A stretch of 64,000 nucleotides of DNA, from the NCBI GenBank assembly GCA_965202585.1, contig OZ241827.1:45694001-45758000 (forward strand), given 5' to 3'. The number at the start of each line of letters is the position of its first letter. The stretch's first letter is position 1. A program made the position numbers and the translations under genes. This stretch comes from Thalia democratica (lineage: Eukaryota). Under the pieces are notes generated by a model. It did not search any database. It was not told the DNA's origin and was given only the letters and a program-made list of their open reading frames with translations. Positions 14,416 through 60,038 of this stretch are shown here, in pieces.

Positions 14416-17400
14416 CTACTTAAACATCACCATTTGTACGAACTCTGCAAAAAAAAATATTTTGTTTATTTACTGTAAATAAAATGATATTTTTGTTAGC
14501 ATAAATACAAAAATCACACATATAAAATTTTCTAACGTATGTTAGTAGCAAGCACTATTTTCTATAAATTTTAGGAGTTAAAACATTGTAATGTAGAAAA
14601 ACTTAAATATTTTGAATTAATTTTATCACTTAGTTAAATTATTTTATGTATTTAGATTTCACTCTAAGTGTACGTTCTTACTTTAAAAAATATTGAGTTT
14701 ACTAATAAAAATGTAAAATATATAGGAACATAGTCTCTTTTTTTGTATAGTTGAATACAATTGAATTATAAGAACAATACATCTGTGAATGAGATGAAAC
14801 TTTAATGTAAGTATTTAATAAACATTAGTCTGATTGTATTTTTTTAGCTTATAAGCATTTTTTAATCATACACTTATAATTTCTATAGGCATTGATGAAA
14901 AATAGTTATAAAATAGAGCAGCTCTTTTTTAGTGTTTAAATTAAATTTGATAAATGCCTAACTAGTACTTTTTTAAATATTTTTTTTTGTTGCTATAACT
15001 CTACTTAGTTGGGTATACGTTCTTAGTTCTCTTCACAACTGAAAGTTCGAACTTCGAAACTTTAAACTATGATAGTTCTGATTTTTAGTAAACTATATAC
15101 CTTATAATATTTTCTTTATAACTTTAACCATAATTGTCGTATTAGTATATTTTAGGTAAATTGTTTTTTAACTAAATTTATTAGAGATGGCTTAATAAGA
15201 AAATTACTTACTAAAATTATTTTTACCAACTATGAGTTTTATCTTTTATAACTTTTTTCATCTTAACCATAGTCTTATTACTTTACCTTCTGGTACAATA
15301 GTTTATAGTTTATTTCAACTAATTTTCTAAGATATTTTCGTTTAGATATATAATAAAAATTTTAGTTGTCATAATTTAAATTATTATGCAACCGTTTAGT
15401 TAATACTTATTGCATAAAAAAATTAAAATTTTACCTAGATTTTGTAAACTTTAAATAGTTTTTTAGTTTAGTTTGTTTTAAACCTGTGAATTATTATAAA
15501 TTACAATACTGTTTATTAGGGTAGGTGTAATATTTGCACAAGCGTACAAAATTGCACGAAGGGACAAAATTGCACGAAAATAAAATTGCACGAAGACACT
15601 TTTGCACGAAGGGTCAGTTTTGCACGAATACATTTTTGTACAGCTTTTTATTAATTAAATTTATATTTTTTACTTTTATATTACTTATTATTTTTTTTTA
15701 CTATTATTATTACCCCTAACCCTTACTCTCGGTCTTTTTTTTCTTTTCTTTTTTTAATTAGTTTATTTTTATTTATTTTTCTTGTTATTTTTTAAAAGTA
15801 ATTTTTATAAGTTTTATTTTAGTTTTTATTTCTACTATCACTTTTAAACCTATCCCTTATCCTCGGTCGGTAACCTTTTTTTTTCTCCTTGTTTTTTTTA
15901 TTTTTTTTTTTTTAAATCTTTTTTTTCTGTTTTTTCTTTTCACTCACGTGCTAAAATGACCCTCCGTGCAAAATTTTCTTCGTGCAATTGTGTCCCCTCA
16001 TACAAAATAGACCCTTCGTGCAAATTTGTTTAAATTTTGGTTATTATCCAAGCTTTCAAAAACATTTCTAGCTTTTGTTAGACTTATTTTGAAAATTATT
16101 AATAAAAATTTAATGATGTTTGAAGTATTTTTTTCAAAAAACCATTAGTTTTCAACTATACATTAATTTATCAAATATTTTCAATAAACCTTCGTAGTTA
16201 ACTTTACCATCACCGTCAACATCTGCTTGTCGAACCATGTTCTCCGCTTCTTCTGATGACAGGTTTTCACCGTAACGTGTTAAAACTTGGTGTAACTCCT
16301 CAGCCGAAATATAACCGTTTCCATCCTAAATAAACAAAAAAATATCAGTTTATTGAATAACTTAGTTTATCGAAATTTTTGTTTTTAAGTAACGAACGAA
16401 GTAGCCTTATATGAAGTAAATTCTTTTTGAGTGAGGGCGTTCAAATACCTTATGGTTCTATCTTTCTAGATGTTGGTATATAGAATGAAATGTAATATCA
16501 TTTAAACTAACTAATTGATTTTTTATAAATGAAATGAGTAGTTTAAACTACAAAAATTTGCAATATCAATAATAAATTTATTGCAAAATATTAAAAAGTC
16601 TTATTAATAATCCTTCTTTTTACAAGTTTTAATGTTGGAATAGTCTCTAGTGCATATATTTATTTTTTTAAATACTTATATTTAATTTTAAGCTCTTAGT
16701 TTTTAAAATTTAGATAGAAAATTGACCATAAACTAATAAACTTTATTTATCTAAAGTTTTTTTTTTTTATCAAATTTTACTTTACTGATCTAAAATGTTT
16801 CGTTTAATTTTAAAACTTATAATACTAAAAAATACTAAATTTATAAACAAAAAATGTTTACATAAAAACTGATTGAATGCATTTGAATTTTAACACTACT
16901 TAGTTAAAAGTAAATTTGTCTGAAAGTTTAGGAAAAAATAAATTTGGCTCAGTGATTTGATAGAAATCTAAAATAACTGTTACTCTAGTATCTCGTTGCT
17001 CTTTTTAATACTCGAAATTAGAAAAACATTTGAAAACCTGATCAAAAGCTTTAAAAGCATCGAGTATTTCTTTTTCCTTAAACGTAGTTTGAGCTTTGAG
17101 ATTCAACATTTTAATAAATTCATCGAATTCTATGCAACCATTTTCATTGCAATCAACCTTTTTTATCATTTCCTAACAATTTAAATACTTTGTTTATTGT
17201 TTTGTACATGACTAGTTATTTACAGCAATTACTTTTAGCTATATTTCTAACTTTTATTGTACGTTTTTTTAATAAGGTATTTGATAACAAAGTTTAAGGC
17301 AACTGTTTCAATAGGTTCAAATATAAGAATAAAATTTAAAGTTATCGTTTTTTGTTAAAAAATATTAAATATTTACTTTAAGTTCTTTTTCAGTAACTTT

Positions 17401-20400
17401 TTTACCAATTTCTTTCATGACTGCTGAAAGCTCATATGTTGTTATACTACCATTTCCATCCTTGTCAAACAAATTGAACAGTCTTTTGTACTCTGAAACA
17501 TATTTTAATATTTTCTTTGTTACTACATAATATGCATGGAAAAAGTCGTAAAAACTATACTAGTTAAAACTTATGTTCTATCTGACACAGTTCTCACTCG
17601 TTAGTTTTTCTTAACTCCAAGATTTATTTCATAATCAAACAATAAGATTATACAACAATAAAGTATTTAGAATAAATTTCTTATATTTTTAAAAATATGA
17701 ATTTATTCTTTCAAGAATTTATTTTGCAAACTAAGTTTCGGTCAAAGACCTCAAAATAGAATTCTATTTGAATAAGATTTATTTAAGCACTGACGAGGTC
17801 TTTGACCGAAACTTAGTTTGTAAAAGAAATTTTTGAAAGAATAAATTCATTATTTTTCCTCCAGTAGTTAAGATCTCTCTATTTGTTTTCTTAAAACGAA
17901 AACATATAATACTCTTAAAAATATTTCAATAAATGTTTTGTAATTTTTGTTTTTTTTTCGCAGTAACAAATTAAATCAAAACTACTTGTATTATAGTTTG
18001 GTTCTAATTAGTAAAACTTAGTTGAGCAAACTAGTATTGCTGGCTCACTTTATAATACAAAAAGTTTTACTAACTTTTATAAAACAAGATGAAAATTTTA
18101 TAGCTATTTGTATAAATCTTATTTGTAAATTTCCTTCTTCAAATAGTATTGTTTTAAAAATCATAGAAACATAATGTTTATTTACATAATTTTATATTTT
18201 TTGAGTTCTCTTGAATTCCAAAAGTTTATTGTTTAAAATCCAAAAGTGTTTTTTAGCTTGAAAATAGCTAGTACAAAACAAATAAATTGAAAACTTTATG
18301 TAAGAAATATTTTAAAATATTCTTTTTGTACGAAATAGTTCATATTAAGTCAGGAGTCGGAACGAAAAGCAAAAATATGTGCTCTTCAAAGTACCTTTTT
18401 TAAACAATCAAAAGCAGTTTTAGTCGTAAAACCTTACAACTAAGTTTTTAGTTTTATAACTAGTAATTATCAGTGATTTAATACTGCATATATTTTCACA
18501 TTTTAATTTAAATTTATATATAACTATATTTTTTTTAATTATATTTGACCAGCAAAGACTTTTTTTATACAGTGCGGCGTAGGAGTAAAGTTTTCTACAA
18601 ATAAACTGGCTCGTTGCTTATAAAAAGTATAACTTCTGTTATATATGACAATTTTAATCCAATTTTGGTTTTAAAGAGTATTTTTTTTGGTATTACTTTC
18701 CAAAACTACCTGGCCAAAAGATACTTTACTTTTTATAAAACCGGTCCTCTATCTAAAAAAAAATTCACAGCTCTAGTTTAAAGTAATAAATTGGTTCTTT
18801 TGGTACATTGTTTCAATTTATTAGAATAAAAGCTAAATTCAATAACGTAAAAATATATTTATTGTCATATATCACTTTTTAGAAATTTTAAAAGAATATT
18901 TTCTTTTTTAAATAAGGTATTTTGTTCTTTCCTAGTACTGCATTGTTGTTATACAACTACTTTGAAAAAAAGTCATATGAAATAAAAAATAAATATAGAA
19001 ATTAAAACTATCAAAATTGATGTTAAAATGAAAATATACTAACATTATTTTTGAACGTAAAGTTTTATCTTACCTTTTAGTTGTTTCTCTGAAATCAAAA
19101 GTGCCTATAAATATTCGTTGTTAGTATAACTTAAAATTAAACTTCAAAAATTGTTAGACAATTATATTATAAACTTAGATAATTTTCAAAAAAAATTAAA
19201 AGCTTTAGATCAAAATTAGTTAAAAAACCACTATTTTATAAATTTCTAACCATCTTCTAAGTACAATGACCTCCAAAACAAAACAACTTATTTATTCGCT
19301 ATAATATTATAAAAACGTTATTTAAAAACGAAAATACTTAAGGTGCTTTACCCATTTTTTTACTATTAAACAAAACTATAAAAATTTTATATTTAGAAAA
19401 AAAATCTTAAACTAGTTTTTAACTTAAAACTAATTATAGAAAGTATAAAAAAATTATTCCTAAGTTTTGTTTTTAAATAAATATAAAATGACAAGCTGTT
19501 TAAGTTTTTAAAAGAACTAAACTGGAAGAAGATTGGGAATATAACTAGTCAAATGAACCTTTTTAAAAGCTTTCATTTTCTAAAGCTTCTTTATCTTACT
19601 TTTTAGCTTCTTCATACCTTTATATATATATATATATATACAGTCTATTGACCAACAAAAAAGCGTACAAAATATTTGGTCCTAGGGCCTGGTGCACGAA
19701 AAAACCTTTCGGTTATCGAGTCGCACACCACGGGTACCTTTAACGTCTTGTCCAGAATATTATATAACGGTTCGAATACACATTACTTTACCAATGTTTG
19801 CTAATGTATAGCTTTGAAAATACTCTTTTACATAACATTTTGATCGATAAAGAAAATACTATTTATAACAATAAAAAATCTAAATTTCCTCACTATAAGA
19901 TATTACAGTGTTTTAAAACTTAAGTTTGAATAAAAAAAACTTTGACTGATAAACTATTGAGGTTAGTTAAAATTCTAGTTACTTTAAAAAAGTTAAATAA
20001 CATTAAAACTATGCAGTGAAAAAGTGGTAAGATTTTAATAACTTTTTACTGATATTTGTTTTATCTTTGTTGATATTAAGGCTTAAATTCTGTAAACATT
20101 TAATACTCATTCATACTAAGCAGACTAATAACACGTAAGTAGTAAAACAAATGAATGACACATGACACTTTTTTTATCTAACAAAAAAACACAATAAAAG
20201 ATAATTACTGTAACATTTACACACTATGCGCTTAATAAATAAATTATAATAATTAATGATAATAACAACAAAAACATTCCTTCTATTTTAAATATAATTT
20301 TTTATATTTTAAAAACTTTTCTAAGCCTAAAAATGTAACTTTAAAGAAGCAATAAAAATATAAAGACATAAAAGGAAAATTTTTTTTTTTGGTTTCCTGA

Positions 20401-23078
20401 GAAAACTAGATTTATTTATTATAAATTTACTTGAAACAGTAATCTCAGGCAACCGTTTATTTTCATAATTGACTCCCTGTTAGAAAGTACATCTACAATT
20501 TAGTATTTTTAGTTAGTTATTTTTACATGGTCATGCTAAAAAAAAAGAAGTTTGTAAATATTCTAAAGTTAACTCAAAATAGTAATCTTAATAAATAACG
20601 TAAAGAATATCCAGATAGAAAATGCTGCAACTTAGACTGGACCACTGTTATTGTTAGCAAAAAAATCAACTTTTGAACCAAAGTAACTGGGTATTAAATG
20701 ACAATTACGATTAAATCCTTAAACAAAAGTAAACAGACGAGTAGCAATGATCACTTATGAACTTAATAATCGCTACTTAATAAATAACTTTTAAATTCAT
20801 CCTGGAACTTTCTAAAAAGACTTTGATTTTTTAAACATAATGGAAGCTCAGTCCATAAATGGTAGGCTAGCGATGTGTGACCACACTTGTTGTTAATTCT
20901 AGGTAGGAAAAAACTTGTTTTGAAGTATGATAGTTATGGGTATTTTTTACACTTTTAAAGTAATTATTAAATTTAGCTGGTTAAAAGTTATTTTAAATTT
21001 AAACATAAAAAGAACTAATTCGTATAGATAGAAAATTAACATCAATTAATATTCTTAATCACTGTGTTAGTTGTTTTTTTTTTAATAAAACATTAAGTAA
21101 AACTGTTAAAAGACTAGTCTCATTTTATAATTACAATGATGTGAAAAAAATATATACTTATTAATAAAAATATGTTGTACTAAAACAATTTTTGTGATAA
21201 TATTTACAAAGTTGTAAAAATGTTAAATATTTTAAAGCAAAATACAGCTGTACTTTTCAATCAGATTAATTGCTTTCTAATGACTAAGTTCTACACAAAA
21301 TTTAAACTTGTTTTTTTATTGTTTTTTTTTTTTGGAAATATTTAAAGCTAACTGAAGTTTTTTCACCTTAGTTTAAAGAAAAAAATAGCTGTTAAACAAT
21401 TTTATTACATTAAAACAAATAATTTTTTGCTTATAAACTTTTATTGTGTTTGAAAAGTATATATGATAGCAAATTTATCTAAATCTAAGGGTGTACCGGA
21501 TCTGGCCTGTTTTCACTAATACCCGGATCCGGCAAAATTCTTTTTATTTTTAATGTTGACTGCTGTATTAATTTTAGCGTATTGATTGTTAGCGTATTCA
21601 TTATCCTGGACATTACATTAAACTGTATCCTGGTGTATGACTTAATAACCGAAAGGTTTTCTCGTTCACCAGGTCCTTGGACCAAATTTTTGAGAGCTTT
21701 TTTTTCGTTCAATAAACAACAATATGTGTTAGTTTGATAGTAATTTTACTTTCTACGATTTATTACAAGCAAGTACTATAATATTTATATGTTTGTTAAA
21801 GATTTTAATGTGTTTTTACTAATAAAATCCTTTTTGTGCACTTTTTCAATGTTTACGATAAGGTTAGCCAACTTCTTTAGTCGGTGGACCTGATATGGTA
21901 GCGTTTTGTACATAATGGGCCAGATTTATTAGACATAGACTTTTACGGTATAATTAACTTATAGAAGATATAAACGATAACAGAGTACACTTTTAAGCTT
22001 AGAGTTTATTAGAGCACACATTGAACAAAACACAAAACTATCTAATTTACAGGCTAATTAATTTAAATTAAGCATGAAAATTTATTTTTAAACAACTTAT
22101 AGTTATTTATTTTGTTACCAACTTTGAAATGAGATCCAGATCCGGCCTTTTTTCACTAACTTCCGGATAAGGCCAGATTCTAGTTATAAAATTTGGTCCG
22201 GTTCCGGTTCTTGATTTTATAGACTACTAATCAAAACCTTTTTACAAAATAATAAAACTATGTTTATTTTCTCTATAATATAATAAACACTATAATTTTT
22301 AGTTACAAGCTTGAATTTTGTTAATGTGTAAATTTGTTTAAAGTTAAGGCTAGTATTTAAAATCACTAAAAAGTTTTTAAAGAAGTTCATAGATTTCATT
22401 TAGTCTTTGTTTACAACTAAATAGGTTTAAACAAAATTTTTCTTTAGATTATCTTACTTTTAAGTAAAAATTTAAAAAAAAAAATTTTTTTTATTCTTAA
22501 AAATTTAAGTGAACAAGTTTGTTATACACTATAATTCAGAGAAGTAAAAAATTATACTTTTATAACGTAGTTGATTTTGTTAGTTAGTTAAGAACAAACA
22601 AACTAAACAAGACCTGTAAAAATATAAAATAAAGAGCATGTATTAAAAAGATAACTGTTATTGTACATAATAGAACTTTTTAGCAAACAAAACAGCAATT
22701 AAAGAAGAGTATATTTTTTTAAGTGATTTTATTTCTAGTTTAAAGTTTTTGTTCGAATTTAACTTACAAAGAACAACAAGTAGTAAAAAATTATAAAACT
22801 GATATTAAATTGTTCTTATAATTTGAATACTTTAATTACAATTTATTTTTAATAATTTGCCTATTTTTCAAATAATTTTAACAAGACTTCCACTATGATC
22901 TACAAGCAAAATATTTTTTACTTTGGTTTAAATATTTCGAACTAACAGTTAATATTAAAATAACTAATTTAGTTGTACCTAGTTTTTTTTTACAAATTTA
23001 TTTGGGGTTCAGCAAATTTTAAAATAAACTTACTTTAAACTAAATATGCTCAAAATAAATAAGTTTCTAACGTACCAT
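14416..23078 (-). CDS. Calmodulin-like EF-hand protein, 149 aa
   Basis: Exons (minus strand): 23076-23078 (ATG only, donor GTACGT; tentative), 19074-19104, 17377-17492, 17038-17172, 16190-16325, 14416-14444; total 450 nt. Four EF loops: [48 protein letters not shown]. Too divergent to be true calmodulin. Not in the ORF track. Confidence 0.9.
15518..16030. mobile_element. MITE, asymmetric-end family with TTGCACGA subrepeats, in last intron of the CaM-like gene
   Basis: Left end AGGGTAGGTGT; tandem TTGCACGAA in the left arm, TCGTGCAA in the right arm; internal CCCCTAACCCTTA motifs. The right terminus is eroded. Confidence 0.7.
17761..17776 (+). other. Retro-copied spliced leader sequence (ascidian type)
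   Basis: Exact ATTCTATTTGAATAAG, the Ciona intestinalis SL as I recall it. It is followed by ATTT rather than a GT donor, so it is a spliced product, not an SL RNA gene. Confidence 0.75.
17777..17830 (+). ncRNA. Type I minimal hammerhead ribozyme
   Basis: Core CTGACGA (17790-96), stem II GGTC-TTT-GACC, GAAAC (17808-12), short helix III AC-TTA-GT, triplet GTT (17816-18). Helix I is GCA/TGT plus ATTTATTT/AAAGAAAT; the inverted copy gives the better-pairing TGC and AAATAAAT. Confidence 0.75.
19621..19640. repeat. (TA)10 microsatellite
   Basis: Direct reading of the sequence. Confidence 0.95.
19645..19770 (+). repeat. Dispersed ~125-bp structured repeat (copy 1; others 21595-21715 -, 23165-23245 +, 43040-43160 -, weak 40615-40675 +)
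   Basis: Shared core CCTGGTGTACGAAAAAACCTTTCGGTTATCGAGTCGTACACC, preceded by TATTGAAC..AAAAAAAGC.CTCAAAA. Confidence 0.75.
21487..22212. mobile_element. Degenerate hAT-like element with CCGGAT subterminal repeats
   Basis: Left end AGGGTGTACCGGATCTGGCC...CCGGATCCGG; the right region repeats ATCCGGCC....TTCACTAA...CCGG. No clean TSD. Confidence 0.5.
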
Positions 23079-55200: not shown

Positions 55201-58200
55201 GTCATCAAGGTCTTCAATAGCAGCATCGAGAGATGGGTATCTGAATAAAATAGTTTTAGTAAGAAATAACAAAACTGTTTTGAATTACGCCACTCACCTT
55301 TCAAGAACAATGTGATCCAAAGTATGGGTCGGCCTGCCTTCACGGATCGCTGCTGCCCTCGTTTTGTCATCACGAGCTTCTGCTTTTCTCAGTTTTCTTG
55401 CAAAAATCTACATGGGATTTTAATCAATTTACAAATAAACAATTAAAGCAATCAAATAAACAAAAAACCTTAATTAAATTTTTAATTATTTATAAAGCAC
55501 TTTATAGAAAGTAAGTTTGAACTTATAGATTTCATAAAGTTAAATATCCAAACTAAGTTTAAATAAAAAATTGAGTTTTTCTAACTGCGTTTTCCTTTTA
55601 CAAAACTTACCAAAAATAAACTAAGGGTCGGCTGCAGTAGTAGGTTTTAGAAATTATTTTATTCATAACATTATGCAAACGAGGTAAATTAATAATACAG
55701 CAATACATATATACCCCTATCCTTAACCCATTTTACCCAAAATTTTTAATCTGCAGCTTTACCTTTAAACCACATTACCCGAAAATATATCAAATAATTC
55801 AAAAAAGTTTTATTTATTTAAAATTAAAACAAAATTTTAAATAGAGAGAAGTAAAATTCAAGCCGATCAGAAGCGCCTAAAATTTGCAGCTGACAGATAA
55901 AATAACTTTTCAACAGTTTTAATGCAGATGTACTGTACATTTTGAGTTAATTTTTGATTTAAGTTTTGACCTAAAATTCATAAAAATACGACGAAACACA
56001 ACTTAAATTTATCTAAAAAGTTACTATACAAATGACTGTCTACTAATTATTTTGACGTAACCAAAAAATTGTGTTGGTATTGTTTTGAAACAAAAATTGA
56101 ATGTAAAAAAAAGATTTAAATTGGCAAGAAAACAATTTTAATATTTAATTAACAATTTATAGTTAGCATACAAACATAAAGGAATTTACAAATCAAAAAG
56201 TTTTTCAAATACAACAATTTATTTCTAAAAAAACTCATTACAGATATGCAAAACAATACTAACATAATGAAAAATATGTGTAAAAATCAAATACAATATT
56301 TTCTAAATCTATACTTAATTCTTTATATTCAAAATTTAGTACAAACTTTGTATTGACGAAATTTATCAATGACTGGTTCATGCATGATGTATTGGATGTC
56401 TTTGAGGAAATAGAATGTTTTGTTTGACGTGCTTCCTTTATTTACCTGCAAAAACAAAATTGATCAAATATAATTCATATCGTACTTAATTACTATTACA
56501 ATGAATTTTAATTTAAAAAGTAAATATTATTATTTTGTCTATTTGCCAAAAACTGCATTAATATTCAAACAATTTATAAGAAGAAATTAAATAGAACATT
56601 TTTCCTTTTAGTGAGAAAATTTAAATGCAAGTTACCTTCTTTTTGTTTTCTGGTTGACGAGGGTATATGCCTTTAAATATACACAGGCGTCTGAAGTCAG
56701 CAAGACTCAGTTGCAGCCTCTTACATGCCTTTTTTCTTGAAATGTACTGGGTGGCTGCTCCAGATTGAAACTGTTGTCAAGTTGTTAGTCAGTTAACAAA
56801 ATCTACATGTAACCAATTAATCTTTAAAATAGTAATTTTTTTTTTTTTTTCTGAAAACTACTTTTTTTTATATACTCAAAAAAAAATCTAGGTTGAAAAA
56901 CAAAAACTGAGGAAGTATTTTGAATTTTTTTTATTCACTAGTAGGTCTGAATTTTGTAAAAGATAATAAATAAGTAAGTTAGATCAAGACCGTTAGTTCA
57001 TGTTAAAGTTTTGCAGTTTAGTTAAAATTTGAATTTTTTTAGCTGTTAATGAAACTTGGTACTATATCAAACTCAAAAAAAAATTTTTGTATACTATATC
57101 CTTAATTTTATTCAAGTTTAGATAACTAGTTGTTTTGATTTACTATTAAGCCTCATATTTAAATATATATAATTTTAAAGAAGTGGGAATCTGTATTTAC
57201 TTTAACAGTTACGAAAATATGTATGTATTTTTAGCCACAATTAAAAAAAAGTTTTAAATTAATATGTTAAGTAAATATACTTAAAAGTACAAAACTTATA
57301 CTTTCTCTTTTAAAAGTTAAACTTTAAAGTACTTAACATGTGATATATACAAAAAAATGTCATAAGAAGTTTAAAATATCAAAACATTTAGTGCTTGTGG
57401 TAACATTAGCAAAAGTCTACAGAAACGAAGCCTGAACTTTCATATGCAGTGAGACAAGATCAAGTTTACAAGGCTTGATCAAACCAATTCGATCATCAGA
57501 CCACAAGCTTTTGGTAGACTGAGACTGGTTTCGTCCTGATTAGAGCTCATCAGTTAGTCACAACCGAAAAAAAAAACCAGATGTCTTGCCTAGTGGATAA
57601 TGTATTGAACTTTGCACGGTGCTGGCGTCACTGATCAATGCCAGCAAATGGACCCTTCATGCTTGCATGTATAAACCTTTTGTAGATTGAAGACTGTAAG
57701 TTTTTTGGTTGTGACTGACTGATGAGTCCTAATCAGGACGAAACCGGTCTCAGTCTACCTAAAGCTTGTGACCATTCAAAAATGATTGAATTGGTTTGAT
57801 CAAGCCTTGTAAACTTGAGCTTGTCTCACGGCAAATGAAATGTTTTTGTTGATTGTAGTAATTAAGAAAGCAGCTTTAAATTACTCAAAAAAAATATTTA
57901 GGTTTATTCAGAAAAACTTAATAAAGTATGAAAAATAATTAACAACTCAAAATTTTTTTTTTAAACACACTTAATTTAATTAATTTTAATACCTCGTACA
58001 TTTTACTTTTTTTTAAACTGTATTCAATGCATATTGTCTATAGCTTGAATGTACTTTATAATATACTTAATTTTAGAACATTACATAATCTTGATTAATA
58101 AAACCAGGAGCAAAATTAATTCAATGTTTGTATTTTGTTGATTTTAACAGACAACATATTGCTGAAGCTTGTTTTTTAAATTCAGTGAAAAAACTCTTGT

Positions 58201-59336: not shown

Positions 59337-60038
59337 TTACTCTGGCTTGCTTAGAGCCAAAATTGTGAAACGAAGTTCCGAAGGATCTCTTGCCATGAAC
59401 TTCTTACAAACTGCAGCAGCGTCACTGACAAAATCTACTTCTGATGTTGGTCCATGATTGATTGGAAAGTTTTTGCGGCCATCTAACTCATACAGTGAAC
59501 CATCCTTGTGCACAAGTGCTACAAAGTGTAAATCAACTGGTGTTTCTGCAGACATGGCTGGAGTTTCTCCACTTTGTGCTGCATCGGTGTGTGCCTTTGT
59601 AAATGATGTGTCTGACTCAAGAGTTTTACCAATATCTTCAGGGCTTAGCCCTTTCACCTTGTCAAAAAAGTTCTTGAACACCGAATTGTCAGTCAGCAAG
59701 ATTTTATCTCTAGAATTTCCTAGGGCATGGATCACACCAATTGTTCCACAAGCGTTTCCTATAGTCTGCTTCATATAAAACACATCAGAGCTTAGTGTTT
59801 GTCCATTTTTTTCTATTGTGTTATTTTCTTCAATGCAGAATGATTTATAAGTATCAGTTATAGGAAAAAGTAAAATAAAGGCACAACAAGGTTTAGGAAC
59901 CATGCACAAAAGTTCAGGATCAACTCCATATACATCACTAAATGTCCAACCATTTTTCACACCAAGAGTATTTATATATGAAGTCATAGTTTCTGGATTA
60001 GACTCGAGTGGAGACCAACGAACATTTGTTGAACTCAT
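59337..60038 (-). CDS. UCHL3: Ubiquitin carboxyl-terminal hydrolase (UCH-L3/L1 type), intronless, 233 aa
   Basis: WSPLESNP start; KQTIGNACGTIG (catalytic Cys), DLHFVAL (His), YELDGRK (Asp); C-terminal ELRFTILAL. Confidence 0.93.
   Translation of the reverse strand: MSSTNVRWSPLESNPETMTSYINTLGVKNGWTFSDVYGVDPELLCMVPKPCCAFILLFPITDTYKSFCIEENNTIEKNGQTLSSDVFYMKQTIGNACGTIGVIHALGNSRDKILLTDNSVFKNFFDKVKGLSPEDIGKTLESDTSFTKAHTDAAQSGETPAMSAETPVDLHFVALVHKDGSLYELDGRKNFPINHGPTSEVDFVSDAAAVCKKFMARDPSELRFTILALSKPE

Follow-up and report, generated by a model that had tools for sequence, protein, structure and literature searches.

Spliced-leader-headed hammerhead elements in Thalia democratica: probable retrocopies of trans-spliced RNAs

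The stretch of DNA analysed here, referred to as the window, comprises 64,000 nucleotides (nt) of the Thalia democratica genome (assembly GCA_965202585.1, contig OZ241827.1, forward-strand positions 45,694,001 to 45,758,000), and positions are counted from its first letter. Its subject is a 216-base insertion at 17699-17914, in which a 16-nt spliced leader (SL) is followed directly by a hammerhead ribozyme. The insertion lies in a calmodulin-like gene on the minus strand, whose EF-hand exons are found at ~16200-16320, 17040-17170 and 17400-17495; an RNA contig splices 16198-16324 straight to 17037-17171. Since the exon at ~17495 opens at an AG acceptor and has no start codon, the insertion most likely sits in the first intron of the gene, with its full arm antisense to it. 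An earlier reading, made from the letters of the window without database searches (the sequence-only reading), had placed it in an intron of a calmodulin-like gene, and both the exon layout and the RNA contig join agree. The insertion consists of two unequal arms in inverted orientation, and its features are as follows.

17689..17698, no strand assigned: left target-site duplication TTAAAAATAT, an exact 10-bp direct repeat with 17915-17924
17699..17762, minus strand: short inverted arm, with SL nt 1-9, an extra T, GAGGTC..GACC-GAAAC-TTA-GTT and a ~40-nt tail, from the comparison of the arms
within 17699..17762, minus strand: end of the short-arm tail, just past AATAAATTC
17761..17776, plus strand: complete 16-nt SL at the 5′ end of the full arm, an exact match to the Ciona intestinalis SL
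17777..17789, plus strand: helix I 5′ strand ATTTATTTAAGCA, made of the distal stem ATTTATTT, an AA internal loop and the proximal stem GCA, pairing with 17819-17830
17790..17796, plus strand: core CUGANGA, here CTGACGA
17797..17807, plus strand: helix II GGTC/GACC, 4 bp, with loop TTT
17808..17818, plus strand: core GAAA (GAAAC at 17808-17812), 2-bp helix III AC/GT, loop TTA, and GTT
directly after T17818, plus strand: predicted cleavage site
17819..17830, plus strand: helix I 3′ strand, with TGT, a bulged A and AAAGAAAT
17831..17914, plus strand: long 3′ tail of the full arm, with AATAAA, ending near CATATAAT (17903-17910); the same tail is found in more than 20 other copies
17915..17924, no strand assigned: right target-site duplication TTAAAAATAT

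When the sequence was read again, the exact 16-mer ATTCTATTTGAATAAG at 17761-17776 was confirmed to abut a complete hammerhead core with no gap to helix I, as the sequence-only reading had described, and the inverted copy that it saw on the left was also found: the arms at 17691-17752 and 17795-17856 are 62 nt each and 92% complementary. The extent of the element had to be revised. In place of a span of 17691-17857, a tail of only ~37 nt and an RNA of ~95 nt, alignment with other copies carries the plus-strand arm to ~17912-17914, which gives an arm of 151-154 nt and an RNA of ~151 nt; beyond ~17857 this arm continues with AATAAATTCATT, a CCTCCAG motif and a T-rich stretch before it reaches CATATAAT. 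The real insertion is accordingly larger, and the exact 10-bp duplication that brackets it extends to 12 bp when one mismatch is tolerated. Two 3′ ends are present, one just past AATAAAT in the short arm and the other near 17914 in the long arm, and the central AT (17761-17762) is common to both arms. The short arm joins SL nt 1-9 and one extra T to GAGGTC, and is without 25 nt, namely the 3′ part of the SL, the 5′ strand of helix I and CTGAC. A further SL-like 16-mer with two mismatches (ATACTATTTGAAGAAG) lies at 18134-18149 on the minus strand, 220 nt from the insertion; no hammerhead follows it, and it is at chance level (0.36 expected in the window at two or fewer mismatches).

All elements of a type I hammerhead core (CTGACGA, GAAAC and GTT) are present at 17790-17818. 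Helix II (GGUC/GACC) is closed by G10.1-C11.1, and helix I is built from the 5′ and 3′ flanks, as required by type I topology. In the family to which the window copy belongs (family A), helix I is formed of 3 bp, an internal loop and 8 bp. One of its pairs is broken in the window copy only, by G17826, which is a private change because nearly all family contigs read T there. The minimum free energy fold includes the distal helix I stem and helix II, and the proximal GCA/UGU pairs are absent from it. Helix III is of the form AC-UUA-GU, and the heptamer ACTTAGT is self-complementary at 6 of 7 positions; in a second hammerhead family with a long helix II (family B), helix III reads AC-AUU-GU and is likewise 6/7 self-complementary. 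Metazoan type I hammerheads have a short, dimer-type helix III with a palindromic loop and are thought to cleave as dimers, and those with a minimal helix III required a relaxed descriptor of their own (PMC4209133). Across the family, position 7 of the core varies between C, A and T, while the remainder of the listed cores is mostly constant, and subfamilies of family B hold the complementarity of helix II with different letters (CTCGTTT/AAACGAG and TCTATAT/ATATAGG). The conservation profile over the copies in hand is not taken as evidence of selection, as these copies were chosen by their core and are biased in this respect. By analogy with the metazoan ribozymes, we infer a ribozyme of the dimer type, the predicted cleavage of which would depend on a protein or a partner; the hammerhead would be kept as part of the 3′ module of the element.

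Two other observations concern structured sequence in the window. First, a second and unrelated minimal hammerhead, without an SL, is found at 57438-57840; it has helix I GACTGA/TCAGTC, CTGATGA, GTCCT-AATC-AGGAC, GAAAC and the palindrome ACCGGT as helix III, and lies within a head-to-head inverted repeat with arms of 59-70 nt that are 91-93% complementary. Secondly, weak matches in an Rfam scan by E-value suggested plant-microRNA-like sequences; this reading was rejected, and the matches are put down to the long hairpin. Head-to-head dimers fold into perfect hairpins of ~60 bp, and the fold of the whole insertion has an energy of -84 kcal/mol.

To place the window copy among its relatives, the genome (801.8 Mb in 1833 contigs) was searched. 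The SL 16-mer occurs in 1299 exact copies, as against 9 for the reversed control, a ratio that bears out the earlier claim that its presence is not due to chance. The 30-nt ribozyme core is found exactly in 765 places, and a 167-nt query gave 82 scored matches out of 1762 first-look candidates. Although described at first as a single mini-element, the insertion is therefore not unique but one copy of a large family; the other part of that description, a retro-inserted and duplication-flanked element, stands. In an unbiased sample of 30 SL sites from contig 1, hammerheads of three families are headed by the SL at 19 sites (11 of family A, 6 of family B and 2 of a family C), so that junctions of SL and hammerhead, for which the sequence-only reading had suggested a search of the genome, are common. 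At 3 of the 30 sites the SL heads 5′ untranslated regions (UTRs) like those of long interspersed nuclear elements (LINEs), with an ATG and an open reading frame (ORF), and at 8 it heads other sequences. Several multi-copy families begin with the SL, a 5′ UTR of 4-40 nt and an ORF1 of ~270-310 aa:

L062:3-1480 and L088:2-1481, both minus strand; also L074, L078 and L067: SL-headed LINEs, each with an exact SL and ORF1

The ORF that follows in L062 and L088 has at its start an Exo_endo_phos (apurinic/apyrimidinic (AP) endonuclease) domain that scores above the Pfam cut-off, and these families are assigned to the LINEs on account of this domain in ORF2. With Pfam, the ORF1s gave the Baculo_FP_2nd domain alone, in 2 of 5. 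It seems that full-length LINE RNAs, too, are SL trans-spliced here before they are copied.

The origin of the junction between leader and ribozyme becomes apparent when the SL-headed copies are compared with copies that carry no leader. For families A (exact core) and B, 100 listed copies each were read manually, and the parental family A element was read in 80-nt strings. When the 60 nt upstream of the family A hammerhead are considered, ~56 of the 100 copies end in CACATATC, a T-run and an AG placed directly against ATTTATTTAAGCA; ~29 have the SL, ending AAG, at the same nucleotide, and 15 have other sequence. A 51-mer that spans the parental junction is found exactly in 77 places and a 29-mer of TTTAG, helix I and core in 327, and the parental upstream part, which is AT-rich and non-coding, is conserved over at least 210 nt. 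The same arrangement is seen in family B, in which 38/100 copies have a conserved upstream part ending TTTTTACAG and 40/100 have the SL, the junction nucleotide being identical. In a further family, L037 and L054 share one sequence but have the SL attached to it at different AGs. Finally, some monomers have SL nt 1 as their very first nucleotide (L032, L045, C2:20799645), in L032 and L045 next to unrelated flanking sequence. The comparison shows that family A exists in two forms, the parental one and a derived one in which all sequence upstream of the acceptor AG has been replaced by the 16-nt SL, and the window copy is of the derived form. Leader-free master copies with an AG acceptor at the junction, which the sequence-only reading had pointed to as a check, thus exist in hundreds, and its proposal that an SL trans-spliced RNA was retro-inserted is supported by these acceptor-type parents together with the target-site duplications. 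None of the refuting conditions given by that reading was found to hold, as far as they could be examined computationally.

Parental and SL-headed copies carry the same variants (CTGACGA/CTGAAGA, GTAAAA/GCAAAA, and TCATT/ATATT in the tail), which indicates that capture of the leader was probably recurrent. A rival explanation is that the leader was captured once or a few times and that the SL-headed lineage then multiplied, in which case the 16-mer in the window would be inherited, with re-splicing at the leader AG possible. Such a history could account for clusters of near-identical SL dimers with common private variants (L047, L048, L050 and L052 within 0.6 Mb) and for tandem partial leaders upstream of full ones (C2:36479652, C2:47112728), and re-splicing would leave no trace because the genomic leader ends AG at the junction. 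However, SL copies exist in every sequence variant of the parental copies, and the L047-L052 cluster looks like segmental duplication, not transposition. Moreover, the same junction logic is found in two unrelated hammerhead families, in a third family and in several LINE families, which argues for repeated capture. Descent from one or a few captures is thus considered rather unlikely, though it is the strongest of the rivals.

Two groups of copies are described here in their own right. Partial leaders are stacked beside a full leader at the two sites on C2 just named and at L065 and L071, as direct copies, including repeated ATTCTATAAGG, and as inverted 5′ pieces, including repeated TTCAAATAGA; they could stem from repeated template switching at the leader 5′ end or from re-splicing of SL-headed copies. 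About eleven family B copies at 10.61-11.62 Mb of C5 (G000:C5) are nearly identical and are all preceded by one unusual sequence, in which CAATAGAAT pieces recur. Some neighbours are ~10 kb apart and other spacings reach a few hundred kb, and the region looks like a large repeated block bearing the family B element.

With regard to the leader itself, the sequence-only reading recognised the 16-mer as the Ciona SL, and the published Ciona intestinalis leader is indeed identical (PMC1488885 Table 1; PMC7986045). Whether a different SL might be used by this species is addressed by a candidate SL RNA gene:

L090:1040-1147 (G000:C26), minus strand, in a 15.085-kb tandem unit: candidate SL RNA gene, with the 16-mer, GTAAGT and a 6-bp hairpin

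The candidate thus carries the same 16-mer, followed by the splice donor GTAAGT. The 15.085-kb unit is the ribosomal DNA (rDNA) repeat, with 18S, 5.8S, 28S, U2, U5, the SL candidate and 5S in this order on one strand.

The manner of insertion is best seen in the head-to-head dimers. In all 16 dimers that could be measured, one tail is 95-98 nt and the other 33-46 nt long, and in 8 copies perfect duplications of 10-16 bp surround the whole dimer. Since the tails are unequal and the duplications enclose the entire dimer, each dimer is taken to reflect one event. Its centre consists of two leaders that overlap by their terminal self-complementary AT, the hammerhead ends ~95 nt from the long 3′ end, and the 3′ end of family A has neither poly(A) nor a simple repeat. 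For a purified protein of a Penelope-like element it was found that both target strands are cut and extended, that AT-rich DNA is preferred and unprocessed RNA used, and that there are two internal sites at which reverse transcription begins, which accounts for the optional 'tail' (PMC11167929). Dimers of a long and a short tail within a duplication fit Penelope-like two-strand priming, and the inverted insertions for which the sequence-only reading referred to Penelope-like elements are represented by these dimers. One may ask whether the 62-nt inverted arms and the flanking duplication could instead mark a foldback DNA transposon or miniature inverted-repeat transposable element, in which the hammerhead-like motif and the SL-identical 16-mer would be coincidental parts of inverted repeats. 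Such an assignment is contradicted by the asymmetry of the arms, which are always unequal (tails of 95-98 versus 33-46 nt), and by the monomers, which start exactly at SL nt 1. In addition, the duplication has no fixed length (10 to 16 bp), and an inverted arm is missing from the most frequent form, in which the ribozyme is preceded by a long and unrelated 5′ part that ends in an acceptor. We rejected it as extremely improbable.

Taken together, these results lead us to propose, with a probability of roughly 0.85, that 17699-17914 is a single retro-insertion of a non-autonomous hammerhead element (family A), the RNA of which was SL trans-spliced before copying. In the proposed course of events, the transcript of a parental copy would be SL trans-spliced at the AG before helix I, to give an RNA of ~151 nt that consists of SL, hammerhead and 3′ tail and retains the module at which reverse transcription starts. 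Still intact at the ribozyme site, this RNA would be reverse transcribed. At a staggered break in an AT-rich target, cDNA would be primed by both strands, one cDNA starting at the distal 3′ site (~98-nt tail) and the other at the proximal site past AATAAAT (~40-nt tail). The two cDNAs would meet at the leader 5′ end and be joined through its self-complementary terminal AT into a head-to-head dimer; in the window copy, the short-arm cDNA would have skipped 25 nt, or the stretch would have been deleted later. The enzyme would most likely be a Penelope-like reverse transcriptase/GIY-YIG protein. At least 136 GIY-YIG matches are found in the genome; their open frames reach 964 aa, and many of them are paired head-to-head.

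The same trans-splicing origin could be combined with another enzyme, if the element were a passenger of the reverse transcriptase of an AP-endonuclease LINE, in the manner of a short interspersed nuclear element. The genome holds LINEs that have an ORF1 and, in ORF2, an Exo_endo_phos domain, and their 5′ ends look intact and are SL-headed too; duplications of 10-16 bp at AT-rich sites suit target-primed insertion by an AP endonuclease, and no GIY-YIG ORF stands beside the listed parental copies. On the other hand, a 3′ end without poly(A) or simple repeat is not in favour of a LINE machinery, nor are the hallmarks shared with Penelope-like elements, that is, the hammerhead near the 3′ end, the two 3′ ends and the regular dimers that duplicate, and do not invert, the 5′ part; the GIY-YIG ORFs of the genome are likewise paired head-to-head. 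LINE-driven copying of the element is therefore judged unlikely, and clearly less so than the foldback assignment.

Several points weigh against the proposal of a retrocopied, SL trans-spliced hammerhead RNA. With respect to the ribozyme, an Rfam scan of the whole window at the gathering score gave no match, and Hammerhead_3 reached only 14.4 bits at the hammerhead, against a cut-off of 48.5 (E = 3.3). There is also no genomic footprint of cleavage, as none of 100 exact-tail copies starts at the predicted cleavage site, while ~93 of these 100 retain the entire ribozyme. Cleavage would part the leader from the 3′ module, so that the templates that were copied would have been uncleaved; read from the copies alone, the absence of truncation at the cleavage site shows uncleaved templates, presumably, and not inactivity. 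This agrees with the view of the sequence-only reading that the copied RNA had escaped self-cleavage. With respect to the leader, the SL gene is kept as a candidate because no clear Sm site is found in it and no upstream motif is common to it and the neighbouring U2 and U5 genes. In Ciona, where the 16-nt leader is identical, a 46-nt SL RNA with the Sm motif AGCUUUGG comes from a 264-bp tandem repeat (PMC7986045), whereas the candidate here lies between U5 and 5S within the 15-kb rDNA unit. That host mRNAs of this species receive the SL is suggested indirectly, by the gene candidate, the identity with the Ciona SL and the SL-headed 5′ UTRs of the LINEs. With respect to the enzyme, none of the listed parental copies is near any of the at least 136 listed GIY-YIG matches, an autonomous partner was not found among them, and LINEs with an AP endonuclease also look active in the genome. 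With respect to transcripts, no RNA whose free 5′ end is formed by the SL was seen in the assembled contigs of the public transcriptome described below, which hold SL-hammerhead units embedded in longer RNAs and cannot show 5′ ends. Lastly, the 25-nt gap of the short arm may stem in this copy from a template switch or from a later deletion. The fusion of SL and hammerhead in the left arm, which the sequence-only reading regarded as a template switch, is present (SL nt 1-9 and T joined to GAGGTC); other copies (L003, L021) have different truncations of the short arm, which favours premature switching. The inverted arm is a regular product of the insertion mechanism, and the internal 25-nt gap alone is copy-specific.

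Evidence on transcription was obtained from public runs in the form of assembled contigs, of which X5 and X6 behave as DNA and X1 is a marine metatranscriptome; at several sites close to the insertion, X6 differs from the window. In X1 the spliced calmodulin-like mRNA is present, the depth over unique intron stretches is zero, and the summed depth on the element, over 17770-17966, is ~1300. A depth of this order over the element, with none on the unique intron, indicates that the family is transcribed. Other very high-copy repeats of the region lie at 15800-15996, 19650-19745, 20528-21118 and 21513-21700, and the stretch 19543-19739, with a summed contig depth of ~6x10^5 in the DNA runs and ~2470 in X1, is abundant and appears to be transcribed. 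Further away, at 59337-60038 on the minus strand, a ubiquitin C-terminal hydrolase is encoded over its full length by an uninterrupted ORF of 233 aa (Peptidase_C12, E = 2.9e-66). This gene may be a retrogene, since it is intronless where other genes of the genome have introns; no leader was found upstream of its ORF.

If the trans-splicing origin is accepted, a wider suggestion can be made, which we put forward tentatively and at somewhat less than even odds. Several classes of retroelement here, the Penelope-type hammerhead elements and the AP-endonuclease LINEs, may routinely pass through SL trans-splicing as they multiply. The leader would supply a capped 5′ end, no promoter of the element's own would be needed, and a read-through transcript would be enough. 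Since the genomic leader ends AG at the same junction, each copy headed by the SL would restore an acceptor for itself and could be spliced and copied once more. With the acceptor at the foot of helix I, the RNA set free in the hammerhead elements would be as short as it can be while it still includes both the ribozyme and the start module for reverse transcription.

Schistosoma (Sm-alpha) and newt (satellite 2) have short, abundant, non-coding repeats whose type I hammerhead cleaves only as a dimer. As far as we know and could find by searching, no 5′ leader has been described for either. The present element resembles both in being a short, abundant, non-coding hammerhead repeat (touched on in PMC4209133). 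Closer likeness is seen to the hammerheads of Penelope-like elements and their non-autonomous derivatives, which are of type I with a 4-bp helix II, a 2-bp helix III and a near-palindromic loop (PMC4209133, PMC11167929, bioRxiv 10.64898/2026.07.22.740005). As in Penelope-like elements, the hammerhead is near the 3′ end, there are two 3′ ends (the 'tail') and head-to-head copies, the targets are AT-rich and the template is uncleaved (PMC11167929). Penelope of D. virilis likewise has a 3′ splice site where helix I of the hammerhead begins, the 3′ end of an intron being mapped to this point (PMC4209133). In contrast to Penelope-like elements, however, the acceptor would be used here for SL trans-splicing, and hundreds of copies carry the leader in their DNA as a fixed 5′ end; furthermore, family A is non-coding and no reverse transcriptase or GIY-YIG ORF is tied to it. 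Metazoan non-LTR (long terminal repeat) retrozymes form tandem direct arrays, from which double cleavage yields circular RNA. Family A differs from them in that its copies occur as inverted dimers, as monomers or in the long parental form; one tandem direct repeat (C2:7301019) was seen among the 100 copies listed, and no tandem array was found.

A parallel for the leader is provided by the DinoSL retrogenes of dinoflagellates, in which an SL-bearing RNA is likewise reverse transcribed and the leader tags the 5′ end of the retrocopy (PMC6050394, PMC5585692, PMC12014239). There the tagged RNAs are host mRNAs of a protist, recognised by truncated relict leaders. Here, by contrast, the tagged RNAs belong to retroelements (hammerhead elements and LINEs) of an animal genome, the leader is of the 16-nt ascidian type and complete, and untagged, acceptor-bearing parents lie side by side with the tagged copies. 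In the literature searched, most subscription journals being outside its scope, no description of an SL together with a hammerhead, a Penelope-like element or tunicate retroposition was found. The parts of the system, namely Penelope-like hammerheads, the helix I splice site of D. virilis Penelope and leader-tagged retrocopies in dinoflagellates, are already known. Their combination, with an ascidian-type leader on hundreds of ribozyme elements and on LINEs, untagged parents alongside, and dimers that record two-strand priming, was not found in the searchable literature.

The proposed origin links three subjects that tend to be investigated separately: SL trans-splicing by the host, Penelope-type elements that carry a hammerhead, and target-primed reverse transcription. 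Untagged parents and leader-tagged offspring are both preserved, in two independent ribozyme families, and LINEs are SL-tagged as well, so the genome can be read as a record of trans-splicing feeding retrotransposition. It may help to explain why, in Penelope-type elements, a 3′ splice site is retained directly before helix I of the hammerhead, and it indicates that the templates copied into DNA were probably uncleaved. The asymmetric dimers joined at the AT of the leader would display, in a natural genome, the priming of both strands from two start sites, which had previously been described in vitro alone and for one reptile element. On the practical side, genomic leaders mark full-length retrocopies, and any mapping of trans-splicing in this species has to mask them. 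If it is true that leader addition propagates promoter-less copies, this would be a new solution to the 5′-end problem of retroelements in a chordate relative.

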